From positions 10,044,001 to 10,108,000 of the forward strand of contig CM106585.1 in assembly GCA_048013815.1 (NCBI GenBank): a stretch of DNA of 64,000 bases. Reading direction: 5' to 3'. How positions within the stretch are numbered: position 1 is the stretch's first letter; every line of letters begins with the position of its first letter. The notes under the pieces are model-generated. The model was given only the letters and a program-made list of their open reading frames with translations. It did no database searches and was not told the DNA's origin. Positions 39,738 through 56,182 of this stretch are shown in pieces. The DNA is from Setoptus koraiensis. Lineage: Eukaryota; Animalia; Arthropoda. The translations under genes were made by a program, and so were the position numbers.

Positions 39738-42700
39738 GCGAGCTTCGAGCAGCAAGGTATAATGTCCATCAGTGAGTATCAATTGGTCAGTGATGCAAAT
39801 CAAAATTTGATGATTACCACGAGCAACAAAAACAACAAACTATTACAACAATTAGACAATAGCAGTAATAATAGCTGCGACAGCGACATATCGGCATCCA
39901 ACAGGCATCACATAGGCAACAACAGCACAACAACAGCGAGCAACAACCCGCCAGACAGCCCGCTATTTAAAGCCGTCAAAGCCATGGACCACAATCAACA
40001 GCATCAGCAACTCAGTAGACAGCAGCAACAACAACAGTCGTCGGATAATCCCATAGACAACAACGTAAATAGCGCCAACTTGGACGTGCTCAATTCAGAC
40101 AATAATAGTAAATTATTTATTGCACAAACAATAATGCGACAATTTCCCTCAATGCTAGACGACTTTGTCGCGGCCCACGCAACAATGACGGCAAACAACA
40201 TGCAAATAAACAACAACAACAACAACAATTACACAAACACTAACGCAAACAGAACGACCGACGATGATGAAACAGATGATTACATGATCGGCGCTGGCGG
40301 TGATATTAGGACTGGAGCTCGCCAACGGATCTCATTTAACTGTAATAACAACACAACAAGTGCCGGCGCCAGCAATTTGACCAGCGCTAGCACCAGACTG
40401 CATCAGCAGCACGTGCCCAATGAGAATAATGAGCAGCAGCAGCATCATCAGTCGCCAGCAGAGCACAGTTTGCAGAACCGGAAGTTGTCACAGCAGCAGC
40501 AGCAGCAAGCATCGCGCAGTCAGTCTAGTCGGCACCATGACGCAACAGTGATGGGCTCAGTGTCTGAGGATGACGACAATGACGACATGATCAATGTTGA
40601 CGATGTTTCCGATCAAGAAGAACGAGACGACGACGACGACGACGCGGACGCCGACTACCTGGAACTACAGGAACTAGAGGAAAACTCGTTGTCGGATGAC
40701 GAGCAAATTGTTGGCAATAACAACAACAACAATAATAATAGCAGTAATAATAAGAAGAAGCAGCCCACTGATTTATCCGCTGATTGCGCCAGACCAACAA
40801 TCAGCATCAATCACCAAGACCAACTGATAAAATCAGACCAGCAGCGCCATCTGAACGTGGCGAGGTTGGCGCAACGAAAGCAGCAACAGCAAGCGGCCAA
40901 CAACAGCAGCAACAACAACAACAACAAATCCACCACGGACACTCCATTGGATCTCAGCACGTGCTCCACGCCACCTATGATGGGCGGCAGCGCAACTATC
41001 GCCACTACTACACAAAACTATGCGTCATCTAGACAGCGTCCGACGGCCGTGTCGCCTGCTGACCAAGTTGCTGGCCAGCATCACACTATGATGCAACAAC
41101 TAATGGCCGCAACAAAATCTGGTCTCATTAGCATGGAAAATTTGACTAATTTGTTTGCCGGAATACAACAGAAACAGCAGCAGCAGCAGCAAACTGCAAC
41201 AACTCAGCAGCAACAGCGGCACCAGCGGCAGGCCACCGATGAGACCGGAAGCTCGTCGTCGTCGTCGTCGGTGTCCATGATCAACAACATGCTCATGCTG
41301 CTGAATGCCCAAGCCAACAACAGCAAGCAACCGACAGCGACAAGTGCGCCCGCCGGCAAGCACCAAGACCCGCAACCGGAACAACTGTTTGCCCAGCAGC
41401 ATTTGAACAGCCGATTGAGAACAGAATCGCTCAATAACATTCTTCATCGTCACAGTGGCAGCGGGGGCGGGGGCGCAAGTCGACCCAGCCAGCATCGCTC
41501 GCCGTCGCGCTCGTCCTCGTCGCCATCGAGCCCCCTATCGCCAAACAACAACAATAACAACAATCAAACTGACCACCAACAACTAGGCAACAAGCAACTG
41601 TTCGATGCCAGCTCCCTCTACGCAATGTACGAATTGCACAATCAGCAGCAGCAATCTATGCAAGCGCTGGACAACAACAACGGAAGTGGATCGCAACAGC
41701 ACCAGCAACATCCAATGTATCACCACCAGAGTTTGTTCAATCTTCAGGCGAAGAAGCGCAAACATTCCGACGACAACAATTTAAGCAGTGTGATGCAATA
41801 TGCGGCCACAACAGCGGCCAAAATCAGCGGCACTCTGGCCAGTCTCGGTCAACAACAGCAACAACAACAACAGCAGCAACAGCAGCATCTCGGCGGCTTC
41901 AATCAGCAACAATCGGCCGCTTACCAGCGGCACCGTCAATTGTCGCACAACAGCAACAACCAAAACAACAGCAACAGACAGCAAGCTTTATATTCACCTA
42001 CCTCAAATCTCGGCGGCAGTTCGCCTGCATTCGAGCAGCAACTCCTGAACAAAAGCGCCCAAAATCACACCAGCAACACCAATCACCTGTTGCTGGGCCA
42101 CTCAAACAAGTCCTTGCAGCATCGCCACCACCAATTGTATCAGCAGCAGCAACAGCATCACAATCATCATCAGTTGCGCAATATTTCTGGCACCACCGGA
42201 AGTGGTAGTGGCGCCGGAAGCGGAAGTGGCCACGCCACCAACAAGGGAGAGTCGTCGCCACCGCAACGTATTCTGGGCCAGACCAGTCTGACATCGTCGT
42301 CGTCGGCTTCTCATCATCATGCCAACATTGTAACGCCGGCCACTACTGGCACCAGTTTGGGGCACCATTTGCCAAAGAGTAAATCTGAGCGTTACACGTG
42401 CAAATATTGTGGCAAAAATTTTCCCCGATCTGCCAATCTGACGAGACACTTGCGTACGCACACTGGCGAACAACCGTACAAATGTAAATATTGTAATAGG
42501 TCATTTAGTATTTCGTCAAATCTTCAGAGGCACGTCAGAAACATACACAACAAAGAGCGACCATTTAAATGTGCCCTATGCGACAGATGCTTCGGCCAAC
42601 AAACAAATCTCGACAGACACCTAAAGAAACACGAAACAGAAGACACACAACAACAGCAACAGACCCAATTTCCGGTCCAGCCAACAGCGCCCATTTCCGG

Positions 42701-44345
42701 TCGGCATCAGCCGGCGTCGCTGGCGCAGCATTTGTCGTCCAAGTCATCGGGTCACCATCACAACAACAATGCCTCAAACACATTGCATCATTTATCGGCC
42801 TCTAACTATTTAAGCGGTCTCAGTTCATCGCTCAATCATCACAGAATGGCAGCAACAAACAACAATCGCAACAACAACAACATCTTGCAACAACTTTCCG
42901 GCGCCAGTCCCGCCGAAGATTCGCCTAGTTCCTCACCGGCGCCGCCGATGCAGCAACTGGCGCCAGCGTCGTCTCTAGCGGGGCCCCTGTCGTCATTGGT
43001 GGGCTCTCATTCAACCAACAACCTGATCACTCAATTCTCATCCATACTCAACAGCAATCCAAATCCGTTGGCGAGCGCCCTCAGCGAGTCGCCGACCATG
43101 CTGGGCGGCGCCTCTGGTGGCCATCATCATCACTTCAATCCGACCATAAATCACCACATGGCCTCTTATCTGCAACAGGCTGCCAGGGCTGTGGCCGCGG
43201 CCAGATTGCGCGAACAACAGCAGCACCAGTCCAGTCCGAGTTCGGACAAATCGCAGCAGCATATTGATCCGATCGACATGTTCTCTGGCGAGGACAATCA
43301 ACGGCAGCGGCACAGTGGCTCAGATCGTTTGCGAAGCTCAAGAGCGAGCAAGACAATCAAGGAGGAACAGTCCAATGATGAGGACGACGACGACGATCTA
43401 GACGATGTTGATGCTGATCGCCAGGTAGACGATGATTCGGATGGCGATGATTTAATTAGCGAGCAAGACCAAAGAGAAGAAGAGAGTGATAAGAAGAGAG
43501 AGAAATCGCGCTCATTAGGCAACGCCAGCTCAGATGGTTGCAAAGCGGCGGCGCCGCGAAATACTAGCGGCAAGCCGGCAACAGCAAACTCTCGCCAACA
43601 ACAGCGGCCCCCGATCAAACAAGAGTCGGCCTCTAGCCTAATCGGAAGCGACGAGGAACTGGAGAGTAGCGGTCGCATTAGACTCAGGCCACGGCCGGGC
43701 AGATCGACGGCGCTAACTTCGGCACTTCCGGTTGTTAGTAACAGACGAGGCAGTTGTAGTAATTCGTCGTCGGCTAGTGGCTCCATAGCTCACAGGTCAG
43801 CGGCTCATCATCATCAGGCTCGAGCCAACGTGGCCAATGTGGCTCGTCGTCAGCAGGGGGCACCCAATGACGATGACAAAATGATTCAGCATGATGATGA
43901 GCACCATGATGATGAGCATGATGACGATGACGACAACAATTCTGACAATAATTGTCCACAATCTGATTACAAGACGGCGGCTGCTATGACATGTGCATCA
44001 TCTGACATCAACGACTCGCCAACCATGGCAAAATTGTCGTCGCGTAGAAAGCGAAGCCAACCATCCAAGTCGTCGATAGATGGTGCCAACAGCGGGGCCC
44101 AATTCAAACAGGACCGGAAACAGTTGCCAGAAAACGATAAGAAAACAACAATCATTCAACAAGATGATAATGAGATCACTGATGCAACAGAGGGCGAGGA
44201 TAGCGACAACGACAACCAATCAGTAGTGACAAAAGAGCACACGATACGGGACGACGACGGCAGCGCCTCGCCAGTTGACAATGACAACAACAATCACACC
44301 AGCAACGCCGAAGATCGCCAACAAGACGCCGTCGATTCTAATTAA
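39738..44345 (+). CDS. ham: hamlet/PRDM16/MECOM-family factor, terminal exon with CtBP-binding motifs and C-terminal three C2H2 fingers
   Basis: 1527-aa ORF 39762..44345 with PTDLS (~40764) and PLDLS (~40944). It also has [82 protein letters not shown] (EVI1 fingers 8-10) followed by an acidic region. Acceptor ccgacag|39738 is in frame with ATG 39762. Confidence 0.92.
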
Positions 44346-45360: not shown

Positions 45361-45601
45361 AAATTGAACTCATTTGTTCGTCTGTCGCCCGCTTATTTCT
45401 TGTTGATTTTCATTATTTTTTTTAGTAGTTTTCTCATGAGTACATATTTTCGCTCCAAAATAGCTCCGGGTGTGACTTATGGAACCCGTAAAGTTTGATG
45501 AGAAGTCAAATTAGATCATTTTGACTAAAATGAAAATTTTTGTTTTCAGTACAACCAGTTCTTCTGTATTGTCCACTGAAAATTACCTGTACGATCCAAA
45601 A

Positions 45602-45628
45602 TGATCAATGATGCGTATGGTTTTAAAC
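45602..45628 (+). promoter_or_regulatory. Conserved 5' flanking elements of 5S rRNA genes (TGATCAAT at about -39, TGGTTTTAAAC at about -23 to -13)
   Basis: Both words occur at the same spacing upstream of 5S copies 1-4, although the rest of copy 1's upstream flank is diverged; absent upstream of copy 5. Confidence 0.55.
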
Positions 45629-45640
45629 AGAAACGCTGTT

Positions 45641-45758
45641 GTGTAGGACCATACTACGTTGAAAACACCGCATCTCGTCAGATCTGCGAAGTTAAGCAAC
45701 GTCAGGCCCGGTTAGTACTTGGGAGGGAGACCACCTGGGAACTCCGGGTGTCCTACAC
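45641..45758 (+). rRNA. 5S rRNA: 5S ribosomal RNA, copy 1
   Basis: GTGTAGGACCATACTACGTTGAAAACACCGCATCTCGTCAGATCTGCGAAGTTAAGCAACGTCAGGCCCGGTTAGTACTTGGGAGGGAGACCACCTGGGAACTCCGGGTGTCCTACAC. It has a 9-bp helix I (GTGTAGGAC/GTCCTACAC), an A-box-like AGTTAAGC, loop E GGTTAGTA and a C-box-like GGGAGAC, followed by an oligo-T terminator. Confidence 0.97.
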
Positions 45759-45769
45759 TTTTACTTTTT
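45759..45769 (+). terminator. Pol III oligo-T terminator TTTTACTTTTT
   Basis: Directly follows 5S copy 1. The identical motif follows the other copies: 46426-46436 (-), 50312-50322 (+), 53734-53744 (-), 54452-54462 (-). Confidence 0.85.
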
Positions 45770-45887
45770 GCTGAAAAAAAAAGCTTGACGTGAGGGGTCT
45801 TCCCATACTTGAGTGATGCTTTTTATTTTGGGGCTTCCATTTTCAGAAATAGAGCAATAGATTCAATAGAATTTATCTACATGGAGT

Positions 45888-45913
45888 AAACATTTTTCAT
45901 CTTATATAAATAG
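45888..45913 (+). promoter_or_regulatory. AAACATTTTT + TATA box (TATAAATAG) upstream of truncated secreted-family paralogue
   Basis: Same motif pair lies upstream of all three paralogues; TATAAATA at 45905-45912, about 115 nt before the ATG. Confidence 0.6.
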
Positions 45914-46026
45914 ATGTGAGGTTACAGTAGTAATATTGCATAAATTGTGTTTAAATGACAGCCAACGAATACGATATGTGAGTCTTATTCGATTTCACCA
46001 ATTTCTGGATTCAAATTTAGATAAAG

Positions 46027-46383
46027 ATGTCTGTACAACAAGTGTTTTCCTTTTTGCTGGTCGTGGGCGTCGTCGGTTCTGTCTTGCCTGGCAGTTTGGG
46101 AAAACTATGGACATCATCAAAGTCACTTTGCAAAGAAAAAGTGAAATCTCTCGACTCAGTGTCCAAGTTCATAGAATTCATAAACGAATTGGACCAGACA
46201 CCGGAAATAGATAGCGAAACTACAAGCAAAATAATCAACGACTGTTTGAACAGTTACAATGGCGCGGAAGATGTGAGAGCCGTGAAAGAAATGGTTCAGA
46301 CACTGCCAACATTTCATTCTGTGTGTGAGGAAAAATCCATCGAGAACATCGTGGCAGTTCAATATCATCTGACCAGCCAGTGA
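46027..46383 (+). pseudogene. 3'-truncated, mosaic paralogue of the secreted six-cysteine family (118 aa)
   Basis: Signal-peptide-like N-terminus MSVQQVFSFLLVVGVVGSVLPGS. Region 46099-46377 differs from 52679-52957 at only 4 nt, then homology breaks off (...HLTSQ*). It keeps only 3 of the 6 conserved Cys. Confidence 0.75.
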
Positions 46384-46416
46384 TTGGTTCTAGAAGCCAG
46401 CCTTTCGCATCTTCTG

Positions 46417-46859
46417 TTTTTCAGCAAAAAGTAAAAGTGTAGGACACCCGGAGTTCCCAGGTGGTCTCCCTCCCAAGTACTAACCGGGCCTGACGTTGCT
46501 TAACTTCGCAGATCTGACGAGATGCGGTGTTTTCAACGTAGTATGGTCCTACACGAATGAAGAGCAGTTTAAAACCAAATTTATTATTGATCAATGTTCA
46601 TCAACTCTTTTCCAAAATAAAAAAGTTGCAATTCCCGCTTCGAAAGCAAGACCGTCCTTTGCAGAAATGTCATTCATTGTCAAACGACAGTTATCTCATA
46701 TCTTCTTCCTAAATATGGCCTAGTTACTTTACTTGACGTCTTTTCAATATGTCAAATCAACAGAGCCCTTATGGCCCAGCTACAGTAGATCACGTTGTTA
46801 CCTAGCTTATCTATCCGAACGCGGCAGGTCAACAGTCTGATCACTAATGAGATATCTTA
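46417..46859 (-). repeat. Direct segmental repeat (5S copy 2 + ~305 nt upstream spacer), partner at 53725-54167
   Basis: 443 nt versus 443 nt at an offset of 7308; only one mismatch noticed (46852 A versus 54160 G); ends at TATCTTA. Confidence 0.9.
46437..46554 (-). rRNA. 5S rRNA: 5S ribosomal RNA, copy 2
   Basis: Exact reverse complement of copy 1 with terminator; convergent with copy 1. Confidence 0.97.
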
Positions 46860-47390
46860 TCACCGATCGTAGCTTGAAGAACTGGAAGAATATTGATTTG
46901 TCAATAATTAGTGTTCGTACAGTGCTGATTGACGATCGATGCATTTCTGTCTAATGCGAAATTTCTATGAACCACGAAAGTTCAGGAATAGTGTTCTAGC
47001 CAACGCTGAATTGTCAATCATATGTCTAGATGTGCTTTTTGCTGAACATTCGATGGTGGCAACTCATTAATTCTTGCTTTGGCCTTGATTTTTTTATTAA
47101 TGGCCTAGAAGATAAGAAGAATACTAATGATATGCCACACATTATTCAATTACGTGTGACATAATGAATCTAATTACTTTTGTATAATAAGGTAAAATAT
47201 CTGTCAGATGAAATTATGTCTCCAACATGGCGATGCAACTTGTATTGTCTATCGTTACTGTCTGATCCAATGAGCGCCTGCATATCAATGATGAAAAGAA
47301 CACACTAGAGGAAGGAATAAGAGCCTCCCTTTAAAGTTTTTGTTTCTCCTTCTGCCCAATTAACTAGGCATACAGCAATTAAAAGACTAA

Positions 47391-49889
47391 ATGAAAGTAT
47401 TAGTGTGTCTTGTGTTCGCAAGTCTCCTTGCTGAAGGTGAGTTAAAACTTGAAAAATTGTTTTTTTTTTCTCAGAAGTAATGGATCAAATAGAGAAAATA
47501 ACCACCAATAAGCAATTTTCGGATGTTCGAAACCATCAAATAATCATGTGAAGCCTCTCTCACATTCATGCTTGTCAAAAGTTATCGAAGGTATTGATAG
47601 ATATAAAATTCATTTGTATTCGTTCCAGGATATGCCCAAAAACTTGTTTGTTATTATGGTTCATGGTCAGCTTATAGACCAGGCTCCGGAAAATTTTCCG
47701 TGGAAAACATAGATCCATATATGTGCACCCATTTGATTTACGGGTTAGTTGAACACAAACGAGTTATTTCTGTAGTATAGTAAATTTCCCCCCCCCCCTC
47801 AATGGGTCGTAATCTTCAGCGAATAAATCGATAAGGCACGAAAAACATGATCTTAGTGTAAAAAGTAGCTTCGGCAAATGTAGCATGCGTACAACAATTG
47901 TACCATGATATTTATATCTAAGATCATTTTTGCTTTATTGATAATTACTAGCTGATAGATCGTGCGAGAATGCGACCAATTTGGTTTGATCTCTTTCTCC
48001 AAATTTGAAACAAAAATAAACTGAACCCGACAACCTGATTTGCAAAATCGCCGACTAGGTTCTCTGGACTCGGTCAGGACGGACGAATAAAAGCCTTAGA
48101 TCCATGGAATGACCTGCAGAATAACAATGGGGCCATGCGAAGATTCACTGATCTGAAAAGATTGAACTCTAACCTTAAAACACTTGTGGCCATCGGTGGT
48201 GAGTAATTGTTAATCAATTCAGTGTTGCAACATAAGAGGCAAAGTGGGAACTTAAGGTTGCCGATACATTCCATTTGCATACATTTACTACAATTTATTC
48301 GAAATATTTTTGCTCAGGTTGGAACGAGGGCAGCTCCAAATACTCTGATATGGCCTCGGACTCGAGGAGCAGAGCCAAGTTCATTCAGAGTGTTTTAGAT
48401 TTTATCGACGAATACAACTTTGATGGACTGGACCTCAATTGGGAATATCCGGCATCCAGAGGTGGCCGATCTGTGGACAAGCGAAATTATGTGTCTCTAC
48501 TGAGCGAACTTAAAAGCGCCTTCAGAGAGCATGACTATTTGCTGTCGGCGGCAGTTGCTGCCGACAAGTTCACTATTGACAACTCATACGACGTTCCGCA
48601 GCTATCCAGGTAAATGGGAGAGAATGTATGAGAATGCAAAAAAGATCTAATCTGACCATGAGAATGTATTTGTAACGACTCCACGAATTATATTCTAAAC
48701 TGTTTGCTCATTTAATTGTGCGAGCAGATATCTCGATATGATCAACATTAAGAGCTACGATTATCACGGAGCCTGGGAGAGCAAGACGGGCTTGAATGCG
48801 CCGCTGTACAGCTCGCCAGTTTTCCAAAAGAGGTACCCCGAAGACCAGTTGCTGAATGTGAATTTCACAATTAACTACTGGATACAAAAGGGCGCTGCGC
48901 GGAACAAAATCAATTTAGGCCTGGCGTCGTATGGTAGATCATTCACCCTGGACAATGCTGGCAGAAATTTCATTTACTCGCCAGCCAGTCAGAAGGGTCG
49001 AGCGGGGGCCTATACGCAGGAGCCGGGCTTCTTGGGTTTCAATGAGATATGCGAGCTACTTCAAGACGGACCGGACTCGTGGACCACAAAACGCGATCGC
49101 TACTATCGTACTCCGTACGCATTCACGAACGGAAATCAATGGGTCGGCTACGACGATGCTGTTAGCTTGAAGGAGAAAACACAATTCGCCCAATCGTTGT
49201 CACTGGGCGGCATTATGGTGTGGTCAATGGAAACGGACGACTTTTCGGGTAGATGCGGCCAGGGCACTTATCCGCTGATAAAGGCTGTGAAAAGTCAATT
49301 GACAAATGATGAGTCGCCGGCGCTTGTCGAGGGCGGCATGGGCGGCCATCATCAGGGCGGCGGCGGTATGAGAGGTGGCGGGTCCCATGGTGGTGCCTCG
49401 TGCAGATCATCGGAGCATCCAAGTAGATCGTCGAGCCCGAGCGGTCACCGCGAATACAAACAGACAGAAGTTTGCCCGTGCGGCCGAACTAGCGGAGGTA
49501 GCTGTCGGTGCAACAAAAAATCACAACCGTCCCACACGCAAGTTAAAGTTATCGAGACAGAAGAAGAATGTCCATGCAAATCCAAGCAAACAACAGTCGA
49601 ACCAAAGAGTCATAGCGAACCAAAATCGCATATGCAATGCAAATGCAGCACTAAATCGGGGGGCACCACCAGTTGCAAGTGTAAAACTCGACCGAAGACG
49701 TTCACTTGTAGCCGCGAGGGTATGTTTGCCGATCCACAAAAGTGCACATGCTTCCATGTTTGTACATTGGATGTCAGCAAAAAGACTTACACTGATCACA
49801 AACTCGATTGTGGGCCTGGCACTGCTTTCAGTGAGAAGTTGAAATCTTGCGACCACATAGCAAATGTGCCATCGTGTCGCAATAAATAA
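47391..49889 (+). CDS. GH18 chitinase / chitinase-like protein with C-terminal CBM14 domain; join(47391..47436,47629..47743,48059..48198,48318..48609,48728..49889), 584 aa
   Basis: Signal peptide MKVLVCLVFASLLAEGYA, then KLVCYYGSWSAYRPGSGKF, IDPYMCTHLIYGF, KTLVAIGGWNEG, FDGLDLNWEYP, SYDYHGAW, WVGYDD, GGIMVWSMETDDF and C-terminal CSREGMFADPQKC...CGPGTAFSEKLKSCD. All four introns are GT-AG with matching phases (1,2,1,2); total 1755 nt. Confidence 0.92.
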
Positions 49890-50075
49890 TTAGATTATCA
49901 AATGTTCATTTATTTCCACAATCGTTTTGTTTATGAGGCATCATTATCGTAAATTGACAGTGAGACACTATTATTTGGGCAACGTAAAAAATTGCCCACA
50001 ACGTGAGCGCCGACATGTAGGTGTATAATCTGGGATGATCAGTGATTAATACGGTTTATCTTTACGGAACAATTG

Positions 50076-50610
50076 TGACATTTCTGCAAAGGACGGTCTT
50101 GCTTTCGAAGCGGGAATTGCAACTTTTTTATTTTGGAAAAGAGTTGATGAACATTGATCAATAATAAATTTGGTTTTAAACTGCTTTTCTTTCGTGTAGG
50201 ACCATACTACGTTGAAAACACCGCATCTCGTCAGATCTGCGAAGTTAAGCAACGTCAGGCCCGGTTAGTACTTGGGAGGGAGACCACCTGGGAACTCCGG
50301 GTGTCCTACACTTTTACTTTTTGCTGAAAAAAAAAGGCTTGACGTAAGGGGTCTTCCCATACTTGAGTGATGCTTTTTATTTTGGGGCTTCCATTTTCAG
50401 AAATAAAGCAATAGAGACACCGAAGAAGCCTCTTCGTAAACGACAAACCGGAAACGGAAATCAACCATATTTCAGAGATGTTTTTCTCGCAAACTCTTCC
50501 CACTTTTGAGAACGAGAACCAGAAATAAAGATATATGGATTTTGACATTCCTTTTGCTATCAGCAATACAAGTGCATGATCGTGCTAATCTCGTTTTTTG
50601 ATCTGCCTAA
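50076..50610 (+). repeat. 5S copy 3 with 118 nt upstream spacer and ~299 nt downstream spacer; inverted relative to 53863-54580
   Basis: 50312-50610 is the reverse complement of 54165-54462 (few substitutions); 50076-50193 is the reverse complement of the proximal spacer beside copies 2 and 4. Confidence 0.88.
50194..50311 (+). rRNA. 5S rRNA: 5S ribosomal RNA, copy 3
   Basis: Identical to copy 1; followed by TTTTACTTTTT. Confidence 0.97.
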
Positions 50611-50828
50611 CGGGATGCAAAAAACTGGCTCCTAGAACAAGCGCTGGTCATGAAATTCAGCATGAAAATACAATCGAGCGCAAGAAACGAGACTTTCTGC
50701 TGGCGAAGCTCGGGAATGTACAAGCCTTATTTTTATCCACAGCATATCATATGGTTTGGATGAGTAGAGCTTCATATCATTATTTTCATCGCTGCTGCGA
50801 ATTCCAATTCAGTTTCTCTACATCTTTC

Positions 50829-51866
50829 TTAAAACAATTCGAAGTTTTCTTTCGCTGGTAGTCTGTAATGGAACCAAAGATCTTTGCTGAAGTCATCCAA
50901 TTGTTCAGTTATTTCATGGCTCTTTGGTTCTAGATCCTTGTATAGCTGGTCATCAAGAATTTCGAAAGCCAAGCTTTCAGGTACTTTCTGAGTTGGATAA
51001 TAATTTAGTATTTCTAAACCTTGACAATATTGGACAGCTCTGAGCCAGCGACCGACTCTAGGGCTACTAATCAATTTGTTGTCAGTAACATTGTCATCAT
51101 CTCCGGCTCTGAAACCATGGAAAGCAAATTTCGCAATGGGATAGATTGAGGCTCGCGCATAACTATCAATCAATTTGCAGGATCGCTTAACACTCAAAAA
51201 TTGTTCGGCCATTTCCTGGCTATCCACACGGAGGAAGTGATGTCTATGCTCTTGTCTGGACAAGAGAGTGCTCGCCGCAACGATGTTCTCTGGTAGATCA
51301 ACCTTTAACGAAGGCACGTTCTCTTCGATTAATTTACGGGCACTTTGATCCTTTTCCACAGCATCCAAGCTTCGTTCAACAGCCTCGTCTGATTGCTCTG
51401 CTTGCTTTAATTTTGTTTCAAGGTTTCTCTTGCAGGTTAGAATAACATTACCAATAACTCTTACAGAAAATTTTAATAATCCATGAGGTTTATCGGAGTT
51501 CAGAGATCGAGATGGCTTGTATTTCAACAATTCATCGACGAAATTTTGTTCGCACACAGAATGTATTGTTGGTATTTTTTGGACTATTTCATACAGAGCT
51601 CTCACATCTCCTGCGCCATCAATACTGTTCAAACAGTTGTTGATAAGCTCGATAGTACTCGGGCTATCTATTTCTGGTGTCTGTTCTATGTCCTTTGCAA
51701 TTTCTATGAACTTCCACACTGAGTCAAGAGATTCTACTCCTTTTTTGCAAAGTGACTCCGACGATGTCCATAGTATTCCCTCGCTATCCTCAGCTGAACT
51801 GCCAGGCAGGAAGCAACCAACTAAGCTGACGATGAGTAAAAAGAATAGCACTTGTCGTACTGACAT
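50829..51866 (-). CDS. Secreted protein of unrecognised six-cysteine family, paralogue A (345 aa, single exon)
   Basis: Hydrophobic N-terminus MSVRQVLFFLLIVSLVGCFLPGSSA; colinear homology (about half of residues identical by eye) with 52592..53656; TATA box at 51972-51979 (-). Confidence 0.88.
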   Translation of the reverse strand: MSVRQVLFFLLIVSLVGCFLPGSSAEDSEGILWTSSESLCKKGVESLDSVWKFIEIAKDIEQTPEIDSPSTIELINNCLNSIDGAGDVRALYEIVQKIPTIHSVCEQNFVDELLKYKPSRSLNSDKPHGLLKFSVRVIGNVILTCKRNLETKLKQAEQSDEAVERSLDAVEKDQSARKLIEENVPSLKVDLPENIVAASTLLSRQEHRHHFLRVDSQEMAEQFLSVKRSCKLIDSYARASIYPIAKFAFHGFRAGDDDNVTDNKLISSPRVGRWLRAVQYCQGLEILNYYPTQKVPESLAFEILDDQLYKDLEPKSHEITEQLDDFSKDLWFHYRLPAKENFELF

Positions 51867-51970
51867 CTTAATCTGAATTTGTCTTTAGATACTGTCTGAG
51901 ACTGTCGATTATTCAATGGAATGAGTCTTAGTATTCACCGATTGTCATCGGACTACCGGTGATCTCAACC

Positions 51971-51992
51971 CTATTTATACGATAAAAATGTT
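51971..51992 (-). promoter_or_regulatory. AACATTTTT + TATAAATAG promoter motif of paralogue A
   Basis: Minus strand reads gaacatttttatcgtataaatagggttgag, homologous to the motif upstream of the other two paralogues. Confidence 0.6.
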
Positions 51993-52443
51993 CACCTAAA
52001 CATTCCATGCAAAAAATTTTATTTTTAGATTGCGATATTATCATTCGATAAACACGAGTAGCATGAGTGTCAACATTCTGAATATTTTGGAAAGTATTCT
52101 TCCCCAAAATAACTATTCTGGCTGAAACAACGATTGAAAGTGTCTCTTGAGTTTCTATCACCAGTTAACCAATGTGAAACTGAAAATTCCTTCCGCTGTG
52201 CTCCGAAGCAAGCGAAATTGGCCTCATCGGTTTTTATTTCAGATTTGAAAGAGACTCGCGTTGAATATTGGCCAGCAATCGCCCAGCTTTCCAAAGTTCC
52301 ATGATTTCATGTGCCGCTTGTGATAGAGACAAGAGATTTTTTCAACATCATTTTTTTTATATTTGAAATTTTTCCACTCATGCCACTCATGTTCATCGAA
52401 TGACAATGTCACAATCCAAAAACAGAATTTTTCTACATGGGGT

Positions 52444-52469
52444 AAACATTTTTCACCTTGTATAAATAG
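52444..52469 (+). promoter_or_regulatory. AAACATTTTT + TATAAATAG promoter motif of paralogue B
   Basis: aaacatttttcaccttgtataaatag, about 130 nt before ATG 52592. Confidence 0.6.
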
Positions 52470-52591
52470 GGGTGAGGCTTACAGTAGTAATATTCCGAAG
52501 TTTGTGCCCGAATGAATACGATATGTAAGACTTATTCGATCGAATAAACTAAGTCTTCAACAATTCCTGGATTCGAATTAAAGAGATTAAA

Positions 52592-53656
52592 ATGTCGGCA
52601 CAACAAGTGTTATCGTTTTTGCTGGTCACCGGCGTCGTCAGTTTTTTCCTGCCTGGCAGTTTTGCTGGGAATGGCGAGGGAAAACTATGGACATCATCAA
52701 AGTCACTTTGCAAAGAAAAAGTGAAATCTCTCGACTCAGTGTCCAAGTTCATAGAATTCGCAAACGAATTGGACCAGACACCGGAAATAGATAGCGAAAC
52801 TACAAGCAAAATAATCAACGACTGTTTGAACAGTTACAATGGCGCGGAAGATGTGAGAGCCGTTAAAGAAATGGTTCAGACACTGCCAACATTTCATTCT
52901 GTGTGTGAGGAAAAATCCATCGAGAAAATCGTGGCAGTTCAATATCATCTGACCAGCTACTATAGTCGACCCAGAAAAACAACGAAAGACCATGGATTGC
53001 AAGCGTTCATTTCAAAGATATTCGGTCAGGTTATTTTAAGCTGCAAAAGAAATCTCGAAACAAAACTAGAGCAGGCAGAACAATCAGACGAAGCTTTAAA
53101 ACGTGGCTTGGATGTTGTGGAAAATGATGAGAGCATTCGCAAAGTGTTCGACGGATGTCTAGATCCTTCGGAAGTTGATTTACCAGAGGAACTCATCAGA
53201 AAGAACTCGTTGGTATTCAAATGCAGCAGCATTGTTATTGCGAATAATGAAGAACAGATTGAAAAGTTTTTGAATCTGAAGCGATCTTGCAACTTGATTG
53301 AGAGTTACGCGCGAAACTCAATCTATCCCATCAAATGGTTGGCTAGCAATGGTTTCACGGCCGGAGACAACAATCATGTTACAGACAACAAATTGAAGAG
53401 TAGCCAAGTGGTGAGACGCTGGCTCAAGACTGTCCAATATTGCCAAGGTGCTATATTGGCAGTACTTCCAAGAGATTTGTTCGAAAGCGCGGCGTTTGAC
53501 GAGCCAGAGCCAAAGATGTTCGAAATGGCTGAGCAATTCACTGACATCGACTTGGATTTTCAATGCAGATATCAGCCGCCAAATGACGAATCGCGCAGCC
53601 ATCACTCCGTGCTAAAAGCGTGGTTAAAGGACAAGCTGAAACATAAATCCTATTAA
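52592..53656 (+). CDS. Secreted protein of unrecognised six-cysteine family, paralogue B (354 aa, single exon)
   Basis: Signal-peptide-like MSAQQVLSFLLVTGVVSFFLPGSFA; shares WTSS.SLC, CLNS, HSVCE, CKRNLETKL, KRSC.LI.SYAR.SIYPI and RWL..VQYCQG with paralogue A; divergently transcribed from A. Confidence 0.88.
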   Translation: MSAQQVLSFLLVTGVVSFFLPGSFAGNGEGKLWTSSKSLCKEKVKSLDSVSKFIEFANELDQTPEIDSETTSKIINDCLNSYNGAEDVRAVKEMVQTLPTFHSVCEEKSIEKIVAVQYHLTSYYSRPRKTTKDHGLQAFISKIFGQVILSCKRNLETKLEQAEQSDEALKRGLDVVENDESIRKVFDGCLDPSEVDLPEELIRKNSLVFKCSSIVIANNEEQIEKFLNLKRSCNLIESYARNSIYPIKWLASNGFTAGDNNHVTDNKLKSSQVVRRWLKTVQYCQGAILAVLPRDLFESAAFDEPEPKMFEMAEQFTDIDLDFQCRYQPPNDESRSHHSVLKAWLKDKLKHKSY

Positions 53657-53744
53657 GCGAAGAATAGCATAATATGAGGTGTCATAAGATGAGACGTGAT
53701 TTGCACAACAATATAAGCCACTTTTTTTTCAGCAAAAAGTAAAA

Positions 53745-53862
53745 GTGTAGGACACCCGGAGTTCCCAGGTGGTCTCCCTCCCAAGTACTAACCGGGCCTG
53801 ACGTTGCTTAACTTCGCAGATCTGACGAGATGCGGTGTTTTCAACGTAGTATGGTCCTACAC
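53745..53862 (-). rRNA. 5S rRNA: 5S ribosomal RNA, copy 4
   Basis: Exact reverse complement of copy 1; convergent with copy 3 and with paralogue B. Confidence 0.97.
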
Positions 53863-54462
53863 GAATGAAGAGCAGTTTAAAACCAAATTTATTATTGATC
53901 AATGTTCATCAACTCTTTTCCAAAATAAAAAAGTTGCAATTCCCGCTTCGAAAGCAAGACCGTCCTTTGCAGAAATGTCATTCATTGTCAAACGACAGTT
54001 ATCTCATATCTTCTTCCTAAATATGGCCTAGTTACTTTACTTGACGTCTTTTCAATATGTCAAATCAACAGAGCCCTTATGGCCCAGCTACAGTAGATCA
54101 CGTTGTTACCTAGCTTATCTATCCGAACGCGGCAGGTCAACAGTCTGATCACTAATGAGGTATCTTAGGCAGATCAAAAAACGAGATTAGCACGATCATG
54201 CACTTGTATTGCTGATAGCAAAAGGGATGTCAAAATCCATATATCTTTATTTCTGGTTCTCGTTCTCAAAAGTGGGAAGAGTTTGCGAGAAAAACATCTC
54301 TGAAATATGGTTGATTTCCGTTTCCGGTTTGTCGTTTACGAAGGGGCTTCTTCGGTGTCTCTATTGCTCTATTTCTGAAAATGGAAGCCCCAAAATAAAA
54401 AGCATCACTCAAGTATGGGAAGACCCCTCACGTCAAGCTTTTTTTTTCAGCAAAAAGTAAAA
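53863..54462 (-). repeat. Complete 600-nt 5S intergenic spacer (tandem unit 718 nt)
   Basis: Lies between same-strand copies 4 and 5; its two halves recur separately beside copy 2 and copy 3. Confidence 0.85.
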
Positions 54463-54580
54463 GTGTAGGACACCCGGAGTTCCCAGGTGGTCTCCCTCCC
54501 AAGTACTAACCGGGCCTGACGTTGCTTAACTTCGCAGATCTGACGAGATGCGGTGTTTTCAACGTAGTATGGTCCTACAC
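54463..54580 (-). rRNA. 5S rRNA: 5S ribosomal RNA, copy 5
   Basis: Exact reverse complement of copy 1; upstream flank unrelated to the other copies. Confidence 0.95.
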
Positions 54581-55009
54581 ATAGACTATGGGATCAACGA
54601 TCGAATATATCACTAACGGGGTTTGTCGGGCAGTTATACTGTCGGATAATCACTTTTTAAGGCTACCACTCAATTCCGAAATTTATATATACAAATGTAT
54701 TTGTATTTATGATTTTCCAAACAATAGTCTGTCGGGCAAAGTGGTACTCGCACGGCAAAATGTATTAACTGGAAAATTGCGGATTGTTGGGCAAAAACCT
54801 CTCGATATTCTTGTTCACCTTGTTCATGTTTTGTCATCGCATGAGTAAGATCAGAGTATTTAGAGGGCGCAAGCGCAAGAAAAGTTTCAGCCAGAACACG
54901 GCCACTGGCATAAACATGATCGATATCACTATGTGTTGGTATCTAAAGGTAACAGTGAACAAAGTTTTATATTGAGTTTTAATAATTGATTTGTAAACAT
55001 AACAAATTA

Positions 55010-55641
55010 TCAGCTATATGACCAATGGAGCTGCCTCGTGCCAACAGGTATCGCAATTATGGACGGGTGAGCAGCGCCGGCCGTCGATATAGCTATGGTT
55101 GTGGGTATGTGATTGGAATGGGCTATGGCCAGATCGTCCTGTTCTTGGCCACCAATTGCTATGGCTGTCTGTACATTGGTAGCGGGATGTTGCGTCACCA
55201 CTTGGGTCAACCGACCACTTGGGTCTATGTGTCTGACAGTTGGCGCGGCCGGCACAAGTCGGGCCAACTGATTGTAGGGCCCGTAGCGGGTGGTGATAAT
55301 CATGGGATGTATTGCACTTGGGGCACCTATGCTGTCTGGCTGTGGTAAAGCTCGAAAAACGTAGCCGTCTATTGAGGCGGCCGCTCTCATCAGGTCGTGC
55401 TGATATTGTCTGACTCGTTGTTGTTGTTGCTGTTGATTGACGCCCCGCAAGTACTGGTTGTGCAGCTTCCTCATCATGGCCAACGGCAACGGATGCTGGC
55501 CCACCGAGGCCACAACCTTGCTCTGGCCGGCCGAGTTGTTGTAATTGGAATGCTGAGGCTGCTGCTGACCGACCGCAACTTGCTCGCCGTTCTTTTTCTC
55601 GTGGGTCTGCTGCTGTTGCTGCTGCCCTTGTTGCTGCTGTG

Positions 55642-55678
<37 letters not shown>

Positions 55679-56182
55679 CTGCTGTTGTTGTTGCTGCTGT
55701 TGCTGTTTTTGTTGTTGTTGTTGTTGCTGTTGTTGCGGTTGGTCGGCTGACTTGGTGACAATTCTGTGACTTTGAAGCTCGTTTCCGTTCAACAGGGTCA
55801 CTGTGTTGTGAGGCGCCGACAGCGGAAACGTTTGCGACGATTCCTCGTAGTAGGCCTCGGGTATTATTATGGGCTGCTCTGCGGGCAAAAAGGTCGGTTG
55901 AACAGGCATGGGCATGGGCAGCGGATATATGGGCCTGTGTACTGGGGGCGCAGGCGGCAACTGAGTGTAGACATTTTGCTTTTTCACAAACACTGGCAGC
56001 GGCAGCGGAATGGGCACCGCGTACATGGTCTTGTGTTTTTGTGGCTTCAACAGGAAGGTGGCAATCTTGCGCGCCCTCTTCAGGTCCTTCAATTTCACCA
56101 TTTTTCCCTCTGACGGACCCGAGCAGAGTGTCAACAAAATGACGCCCAGCGAGCCCGCAAACAATATCTGGTCCCACAACAT
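55010..56182 (-). CDS. Secreted Q/P-rich protein of unknown function (390 aa, single exon)
   Basis: ATG start and hydrophobic leader MLWDQILFAGSLGVILLTLCSGPSEG, then a basic segment (KMVKLKDLKRARK), AVPIPLPLPVF, a Pro-rich region and a poly-Q tract. Stop TAA at 55010-55012, with an ATTAAA ~30 nt downstream on the minus strand. Confidence 0.75.

Follow-up and report, generated by a model that had tools for sequence, protein, structure and literature searches.

A probably scrambled 5S rRNA gene cluster interleaved with secreted-protein genes in a mite genome

Genes of the 5S island

Within the window (the whole stretch of DNA analysed, 64,000 nt), positions 45641-54580 hold five 5S rRNA genes, a to e, among which lie a chitinase gene and three copies (A, B and C) of an orphan secreted-protein gene. 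5S genes a and b converge on the truncated gene C (+), the chitinase gene (+) follows, and c and d converge on A and B, which point away from each other, with e behind d in the same orientation. The genes are as follows:

45641-45759, + strand, 5S gene a (Rfam RF00001)
45862-46416, + strand, truncated family gene C and its promoter; ORF 46027-46383, 118 aa
46436-46554, - strand, 5S gene b (Rfam RF00001)
47292-49889, + strand, GH18 chitinase with a C-terminal CBM14, five exons (Pfam PF00704 and PF01607; reading frames)
50194-50312, + strand, 5S gene c (Rfam RF00001)
50611-51866, - strand, family gene A; CDS 50829-51866, 345 aa, with a 218-nt 3′ flank abutting the spacer of c
52592-53656, + strand, family gene B, 354 aa
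53744-53862, - strand, 5S gene d (Rfam RF00001)
54462-54580, - strand, 5S gene e (Rfam RF00001)

Exactly five full-length 5S genes were called with RF00001 (108.2 bits each, gathering score 38, model positions 1-120), and all are letter-identical. The calls and the identity bear out the first-pass annotation, which had described five identical genes (+,-,+,-,-) that do not form a plain tandem array and two convergent pairs enclosing protein genes; the gene length, given there as 118 nt, is 119 nt. A T-run typical of a Pol III terminator, TTTACTTTTT, lies directly 3′ of all five copies. A TATA-like stretch is present at about -31 to -24 in four of them and absent from copy a; copy e has an unrelated upstream region, in which such a stretch is nevertheless present. 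All five copies may be transcribed by Pol III. RNA contigs near c and d may derive from neighbouring mRNAs. No other small RNA genes (snRNA, SL RNA, tRNA) were found in the island.

The chitinase is unrelated to the A/B/C family. Its Glyco_hydro_18 domain was matched with E-values of 1e-38 and 7e-28, and its DxxDxDxE site reads DGLDLNWEYP, with Asn in place of the third Asp and the Glu kept. The gene is transcribed, and spliced RNA contigs place GT..AG introns at approximately 47435-47626, 47743-48057, 48198-48316 and 48607-48724. Exon 1 has its ATG at 47391 and begins with the signal-peptide-like sequence MKVLVCLVFASLLAEG.

A, B and C belong to an orphan, all-helical secreted family of which A and B are intact. 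The family had no Pfam match, even at E 10, and no match among AlphaFold-DB clusters, where all TM scores were below 0.25; DUF19/CPG4, an identity raised by the Atlas leads, was rejected with a score of 0.81, under the useful range. A and B are 49% identical (dN 0.37, dS 0.92). Gene A is transcribed, with RNA contigs at 50583-51085 and 51222-51579 in run X7, a run that yielded no RNA contigs at C, and another RNA contig links the 3′ flank of B with the 3′ end of 5S d. Hydrophobic leaders, judged by eye, open all four island proteins (A, B, C and the chitinase), in keeping with the signal peptides annotated earlier. The next gene outside the island (55010-56182, - strand), which is Q-rich, has a leader too, so secretion is not peculiar to the bracketed genes. 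On the other side, a zinc-finger gene occupies 39762-44345.

5S units, junctions and copy number

Each 5S gene lies in a piece, of different size in each case, of one 718-bp unit composed of the gene and its spacer. The unit is intact only between d and e, which are spaced 718 bp apart and form the sole true tandem. The cluster is not a head-to-tail array of constant unit length: a and c are inverted, and all units are truncated except for the d-e spacer. The units and the larger segments are:

45602-45861, + strand, 5S unit fragment a: 39 nt of diverged upstream spacer, 5S gene, 102 nt of downstream spacer
46417-46859, - strand, 5S unit fragment b: 19 nt of downstream and 305 nt of upstream spacer, ending at TTA
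46860-50610, no strand, segment with the chitinase and 5S c, 3.75 kb, reversed relative to the tandem unit
50076-50610, + strand, 5S unit fragment c: 118 nt of upstream and 298 nt of downstream spacer
51018-53449, no strand, old inverted duplication with A and B head to head; arms 51018-52085 and 52359-53449, 69% identical
53722-54167, - strand, 5S unit d, with the complete upstream spacer
54165-54581, - strand, 5S unit e, with the complete downstream spacer

Divergence among the spacers is 0-1.2%. Fragment b is identical to copy d at 442/443 positions, and fragment c has two differences from b and d and five from e, where similarity to the unit ends 1 nt upstream of the 5S gene. Copies a and e form 222-nt perfect inverted arms, and b and c a 257-nt inverted repeat, 99% identical, around the chitinase segment. 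Two copies are mosaics. Over the 5S gene and 102 nt downstream, copy a matches e at 222/222 positions, whereas its upstream 39 nt match the canonical spacer at 25/39; gene C is about 85% identical to B in its 5′ part, with indels, and then 99% identical over 46098-46377. Because of these abrupt changes in identity, both are best read as products of gene conversion.

The rearrangement breakpoints are located inside 5S spacers. At the readable junctions we observed 3-8 nt of microhomology (TTA, CAATAGA, TGACCAGC) between spacer and unrelated DNA, and none of them represents recombination inside an extended stretch of 5S homology. The spacer of b ends and that of c starts at one and the same position in the 718-bp unit, with TTA common to both. 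The body of gene C ends at the 8-nt TGACCAGC and is followed by a 39-nt remnant of an A-like 3′ flank (28/35 matches, a score reached in 0/500 shuffles). C and A thus have a homologous 3′ flank in common, which ends 3-5 nt from 5S-unit sequence. Among the outer flanks (start and end of the reversed segment, beyond e, before a, the 3′ flank of B and the palindrome centre), no additional homology was found beyond chance.

Repeats of up to 443 nt that are 99-100% identical are open to mis-joining by an assembler, and a collapsed or mis-joined 5S array was considered as a rival reading. The read data speak against it. The junctions at 46859/60, 50075/76, 50610/11 and 45861/62 are each spanned by contigs in two DNA runs (X1 and X2), and the A-spacer and B-5S junctions are also carried by RNA contigs from a third label. 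Depth at 46643-46859 is 215-230, compared with 104-128 for single-copy DNA, which fits two copies, and the part common to C and B is likewise at about twice the single-copy depth. Spacer depth therefore agrees with the assembled copy numbers and not with a collapsed array, and we regard an artefact of assembly as exceedingly improbable. Both ends of 46860-50610 are spanned in X1 and X2, although short-read contigs do not reveal which way round a segment lies between the two copies of the 257-nt inverted b/c repeat.

Origin of the arrangement

We consider the locus to be most probably (approximately 70%) a small, low-copy 5S cluster in which local duplications, inversions and deletions have scrambled the order while gene conversion has preserved uniformity. 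The mini-cluster of 5S rDNA would lie in a gene-dense part of a small arthropod genome, probably that of an eriophyoid-type mite. A single 718-bp unit would have been the ancestor of all five genes, with the d-e tandem as its intact survivor, and ordinary local events would then have interleaved 5S units with a small orphan-family cluster and the chitinase. In the order that we infer from this one genome, an old inverted duplication would have given rise to A and B, a later duplication to C with its 5S gene, and a two-break inversion would have turned 46860-50610, while microhomology-mediated deletions would have truncated C and trimmed the spacers. Gene conversion (concerted evolution) would be the homogenising process, as is suggested by the low divergence of the spacers and by the mosaic copies, and would account for 5S genes and spacers that are 99-100% identical. 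The appearance of identical brackets would then be due to the contrast between homogenised 5S units and the diverging genes between them. Two observations count against this explanation. A convergent 5S gene adjoins the 3′ end of all three family copies in the window, although the junctions differ between copies, and under a simple two-break inversion it is mere coincidence that the 3′ flanks of C and A both end near 5S-unit DNA.

These same features are what one would expect if recombination between 5S units shuffled gene-plus-5S cassettes, with putative TFIIIC-bound insulation of the family. Three modules of a gene facing a 5S gene lie within 9 kb, and the homology between the 3′ flanks of C and A extends as far as the 5S unit. 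Moreover, exchange in the b/c inverted repeat would flip the chitinase segment while leaving the same short-read junctions, and the present order could derive in this way from a partial unit and a full unit on either side of an oppositely oriented chitinase. The breakpoints that can be read, however, join spacer to unrelated DNA through microhomology, and the chitinase is not a member of the family. In addition, a related organism has at least 11 close family genes (contigs L001-L007) and two distant ones (L008 and L009), expanded in tandem, with head-to-tail pairs on four contigs, and no 5S or spacer-like DNA beside them in the nine contigs (about 50 kb) covered. Since those genes lack 5S neighbours, and since further 5S loci in the same genome have unrelated flanks, the linkage of gene and 5S appears to be local and lineage-specific. 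Full-length relatives of the chitinase (L010-L012) lie in a serpin-thiolase-tropomodulin neighbourhood that has neither a family gene nor a 5S gene; this different neighbourhood is therefore uninformative on the synteny of the present interval. We consider shuffling by 5S recombination unlikely, and a general 5S-driven cassette system is not what the locus looks like. The earlier proposal that 5S units act as portable homology thus holds in so far as genes and 5S units were duplicated and rearranged together locally, as indicated by the convergent 5S genes at 3/3 copies, the C/A flank and the spacer breakpoints; the microhomology junctions, the unrelated chitinase, the relative's family genes and the other 5S loci speak against its wider form.

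A bolder version, which we rate as quite unlikely, is that in this mite lineage the few dispersed 5S genes have joined a rapidly evolving secreted family in a co-duplicating module of convergent gene and 5S, in which conversion spills over into the genes and exchange between inverted units repeatedly flips segments. Such spill-over would be exemplified by the 280 nt over which C and B are 99% identical. If this were true, homogenisation of a Pol III gene would drive the turnover of putative secreted effectors.

Alternatively, pieces of a 5S array, of unit length or shorter (e.g., excised circles), may have integrated recently beside genes that had already diverged, so that their identity would reflect youth. 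This would explain why spacers that are 99-100% identical lie next to genes with a dS of 0.92, and extrachromosomal spread of 5S sequences has been proposed before (PMC5437419, PMC10946416). Several 5S loci break at or close to the run of A residues that follows the gene on its 3′ side, and under the b/c exchange model c would have very nearly the length of one unit. However, the old, diverged upstream spacer of copy a, joined to a perfectly identical gene and downstream spacer, needs conversion rather than insertion, and C is a mosaic of the same type. The cluster also lacks a target-site duplication and the unit lacks terminal inverted repeats, and we view recent arrival as very unlikely. 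Two further candidates were rejected: a composite or TIR transposon carrying the island, as no direct repeat of 2-10 nt abuts the a/e arms, and retroposition of 5S copies b, c and d, which keep 118-305 nt of untranscribed upstream spacer.

Returning to the scrambled, conversion-homogenised cluster, the locus documents at base resolution how, in a streamlined animal genome, a 5S array may decay into a mosaic with expressed protein-coding genes while conversion maintains the identity of its RNA genes. It is small and tractable for the study of concerted evolution across inverted, separated copies. We found no evidence in it for 5S units as a general shuffling device for a secreted/effector family, and that more exciting claim has to be tempered. 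The orphan family itself, which has no Pfam family or fold match and is expanded in a relative, may merit its own study.

Comparison with known systems

Dispersed, low-copy 5S genes occur in some fungi, such as Schizosaccharomyces pombe and Neurospora. There, as here, low-copy genes are spread over several loci whose flanks are unrelated, and conservation is confined to the gene core; the present case differs in that it concerns an animal genome in which a remnant tandem unit is still present.

Interrupted, inverted and dispersed blocks of 5S rDNA have already been described in Esox pikes, where homogenisation between blocks varies (PMC5437419). Both cases have short 5S tandems, blocks parted by unrelated DNA, and inverted blocks. 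However, the pikes have thousands of copies in kilobase blocks (PMC5437419), whereas the five copies of this locus have expressed protein-coding genes between them and lie in a compact genome.

Rare dispersal or linkage of 5S genes also has precedent (PMC10946416), and linkage to histones and to spliced-leader RNA is on record, at least as that paper summarises it (Drouin and de Sa, 1995, as cited in PMC10946416). As in histone-5S and SL-5S units, a 5S gene is here physically repeated along with another gene. In those units the partner belongs to a regular repeat that is conserved throughout the genome and between species, while at this locus the partner is a Pol II gene for a secreted protein, in three irregular modules at one locus that are absent in the relative. 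Finally, the island resembles the palindromes of sex chromosomes, in which inverted copies stay near-identical via conversion and the intervening segment may invert (PMC3723533, PMC8327919), with the difference that here homogenisation is confined to the outer 5S parts, and the inner A/B arms are 69% identical.

Island layout and assembly

An earlier reading of the sequence had placed five identical 5S rRNA genes in mixed orientation at 45641-54580, and both their positions and their strands were borne out: Rfam and sequence comparison gave five full-length genes of 119 nt, mutually identical, with TTTACTTTTT directly 3′ of each. The island held no other Rfam match, and no tRNA was found in it. 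Self-comparison showed that each 5S gene carries part of one 718-bp unit, which is intact only between copies d and e (start-to-start spacing 718 bp), and found no other unit-like sequence in the whole 64-kb window. Unit positions are numbered u1-u721, starting from TTA at 54165.

Features of the island, with the part of the unit that maps to each 5S copy
45641-45759, + strand: 5S copy a; u196-455, inverted
46027-46383, + strand: truncated ORF C, between 5S genes
46436-46554, - strand: 5S copy b; u279-721
47292-49889, + strand: chitinase gene, between 5S genes
50194-50312, + strand: 5S copy c; u1-535, inverted
50829-51866, - strand: gene A, between 5S genes
52592-53656, + strand: gene B, between 5S genes
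53744-53862, - strand: 5S copy d; u276-721
54462-54580, - strand: 5S copy e; u1-417

Mis-assembly of collapsed 5S repeats had been named as a possible source of this layout and is contradicted by independent contigs. We compared Logan contigs of four sequencing runs with 45580-51579. Runs X1 and X2 have the flat depth typical of DNA (104-128), and their contigs cross 46859/60 and 50075/76 (X1, record 4; X2, records 13 and 14), 50610/11 (X2, record 11) and 45861/62 (X1/X2, records 1 and 9), reaching 30-38 nt into the repeats, the maximum for such contigs. Depth was 215-230 in the distal upstream spacer (46643-46859), 246-260 in the downstream spacer (50399-50610) and 189-221 in the part common to C and B, each about twice the single-copy depth and matching the assembled copy number; the spacer depths therefore indicate that there is no long hidden array of the 718-bp unit. 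The observed arrangement is real and well assembled. One X1 contig tracks the C/B shared sequence to 46331 and then enters DNA absent from the window, which could be a further family fragment elsewhere or a structural allele.

The depth of the 5S core is far higher, roughly ten-fold or more, as a summed depth that does not equal copy number. Loose contig ends revealed further flanks absent from the window, at least two upstream of a 5S gene and at least two downstream, which indicates 5S genes at other loci with unrelated flanks. TATATATA lies at about -31 to -24 in both of the upstream ones. In X1/X2 contigs at 50188-50189 and 45776/46419-46423, likeness is limited to about -6 to +13..+19 around the 5S gene, and the upstream flanks at these loci are unrelated to the island, with TATATATA present. 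Several other 5S loci, like b and d, stop in or near an A-run just 3′ of the terminator. An X2 contig (45777-46418) runs straight from the A-run that follows one 5S into the T-run that precedes a second, inverted 5S, a weak hint, with only 29 nt on the shorter contig side, of a tail-to-tail pair at another locus.

Probable homogenisation and rearrangement

Pairwise, the unit fragments show 0 to 5 base differences in up to 443 nt, except in the 39-nt stretch upstream of a, where only 25/39 positions agree with the canonical spacer; from the gene onward, a and e are identical (222/222). The non-coding 5S spacers differ by 0-1.2%, while the bracketed genes are near saturation at synonymous sites. 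Copy a joins an old upstream region to an identical gene and downstream part. In C, identity to B is about 85%, with indels, over the promoter and first codons and rises to 99% over 46098-46377. Both are mosaics of the type made by gene conversion. Together with the near-identical spacers, they argue that the identical brackets reflect concerted evolution among copies already in place, in preference to recent insertion.

The gene body of C stops at TGACCAGC, an octamer also present in the 3′ flank of A, and the next 35 nt match the end of that flank at 28/35 positions (0/500 shuffles score as high). The mosaic identity and the octamer suggest that C is an older paralogue, in part overwritten by conversion from B and later truncated, which would have occurred through microhomology-mediated deletion. 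CAATAGA is repeated at the junction of a's spacer with C's promoter, and at all readable junctions spacer DNA meets unrelated DNA via a few common bases. The spacer of b stops and that of c starts at one unit position, with TTA common to both, so that a single two-break inversion of 46860-50610 accounts for both junctions; the preceding order would have been a>C><b<c<chitinase<A B><d<e. The flanks of C and A both end 3-5 nt from 5S-unit DNA, a coincidence under such a simple inversion. This is expected if, alternatively, exchange took place inside the 257-nt inverted b/c repeat at a time when A was flanked by one full unit, but the former c must then have spanned exactly one unit; the two routes leave identical short-read junctions. 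The island is best read as a 5S mini-cluster in decay, which end-joining-type events have rearranged and conversion has homogenised.

Genes between and beside the 5S copies

A and B are 49% identical (dN 0.37, dS 0.92) and lie head to head in an inverted duplication (51018-52085 versus 53449-52359, 69% identical), which is old. Members of their family have a leader peptide and conserved cysteines. An initial search gave only three relatives, all from one Logan sample; a profile search across 1.8 billion representatives gave 38 family clusters; of nine that were looked up, eight again belonged to this sample. No Pfam family was found, and the predicted fold, all-helical with pLDDT 70, had no match among AlphaFold-DB clusters; among proteins of known function the family thus has no recognisable relative. 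Many relatives (among L003:1172-2614 and P0007-P0040) are 430-600 aa long, and the one long relative read (L003:1172-2614) has a hydrophobic stretch at its end, suggesting that membrane-anchored long forms exist beside short secreted ones.

The chitinase has GH18 and CBM14 domains, with the leader encoded by exon 1. Of its named relatives, the closest belongs to the eriophyoid mite Fragariocoptes setiger, in support of the first-pass annotation's guess of a mite. The catalytic motif in exon 4 (48440-48470) reads DGLDLNWEYP, in which the third Asp of DxxDxDxE is replaced by Asn and the catalytic Glu is kept; activity may be reduced or altered. Run X7 is RNA, and its spliced chitinase contigs show four GT..AG introns. 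RNA contigs from X7 also cover gene A and pass its junction into the spacer of c (50313-50610), and one links the 3′ flank of B with the 3′ end of 5S d (53657-53743), so that mRNA 3′ ends appear to overlap the convergent 5S units. No X7 contig was placed on C.

Just beyond the island, the product of 55010-56182 (-) is 390 aa long and combines a hydrophobic leader with a long polyglutamine tract, which suggests that the neighbourhood is generally rich in leader-bearing genes. At 39762-44345 (+) lies an intronless single ORF of 1527 aa with Q/N/S runs and three C2H2 zinc fingers near residue 900, which we take to be the gene previously called hamlet.

The cassette proposal and known systems

The first-pass annotation had proposed that 5S units provide the homology through which a secreted gene family is duplicated, inverted and shuffled in a cassette system. 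Seven contigs of the Logan sample supplying the family relatives carry 11 family genes between them; on four of these contigs the genes form head-to-tail pairs with 0.6-1.8 kb between copies. Another two contigs each have a more distant member. No 5S match was found in about 50 kb around these genes (5S just past contig ends is possible; short-read contigs can break at repeats), no spacer similarity was found on the three contigs compared (L001-L003), and the intergenic spaces within the four pairs, all complete, contain no 5S. These pairs point to simple tandem duplication, with no involvement of 5S, as the way in which the family expands. Relatives of the chitinase, on contigs of 14-15 kb, have a different neighbourhood, without 5S or family genes, and are therefore uninformative on synteny. 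The proposal of a 5S-driven cassette system is supported only in part; the linkage of secreted genes to 5S is confined here to one irregular locus.

We found no description in the literature of 5S linkage to secreted-family Pol II genes. Pikes are known to have 5S blocks that are interrupted, inverted or dispersed, with extrachromosomal spread proposed for them (PMC5437419), and linkage to histone or spliced-leader genes, as well as rare 5S dispersal, has been reviewed (PMC10946416). In contrast to the pike blocks and to histone or spliced-leader linkage, the island has a very low 5S copy number, and its 5S genes are interleaved with Pol II genes that are expressed and belong to a secreted family.
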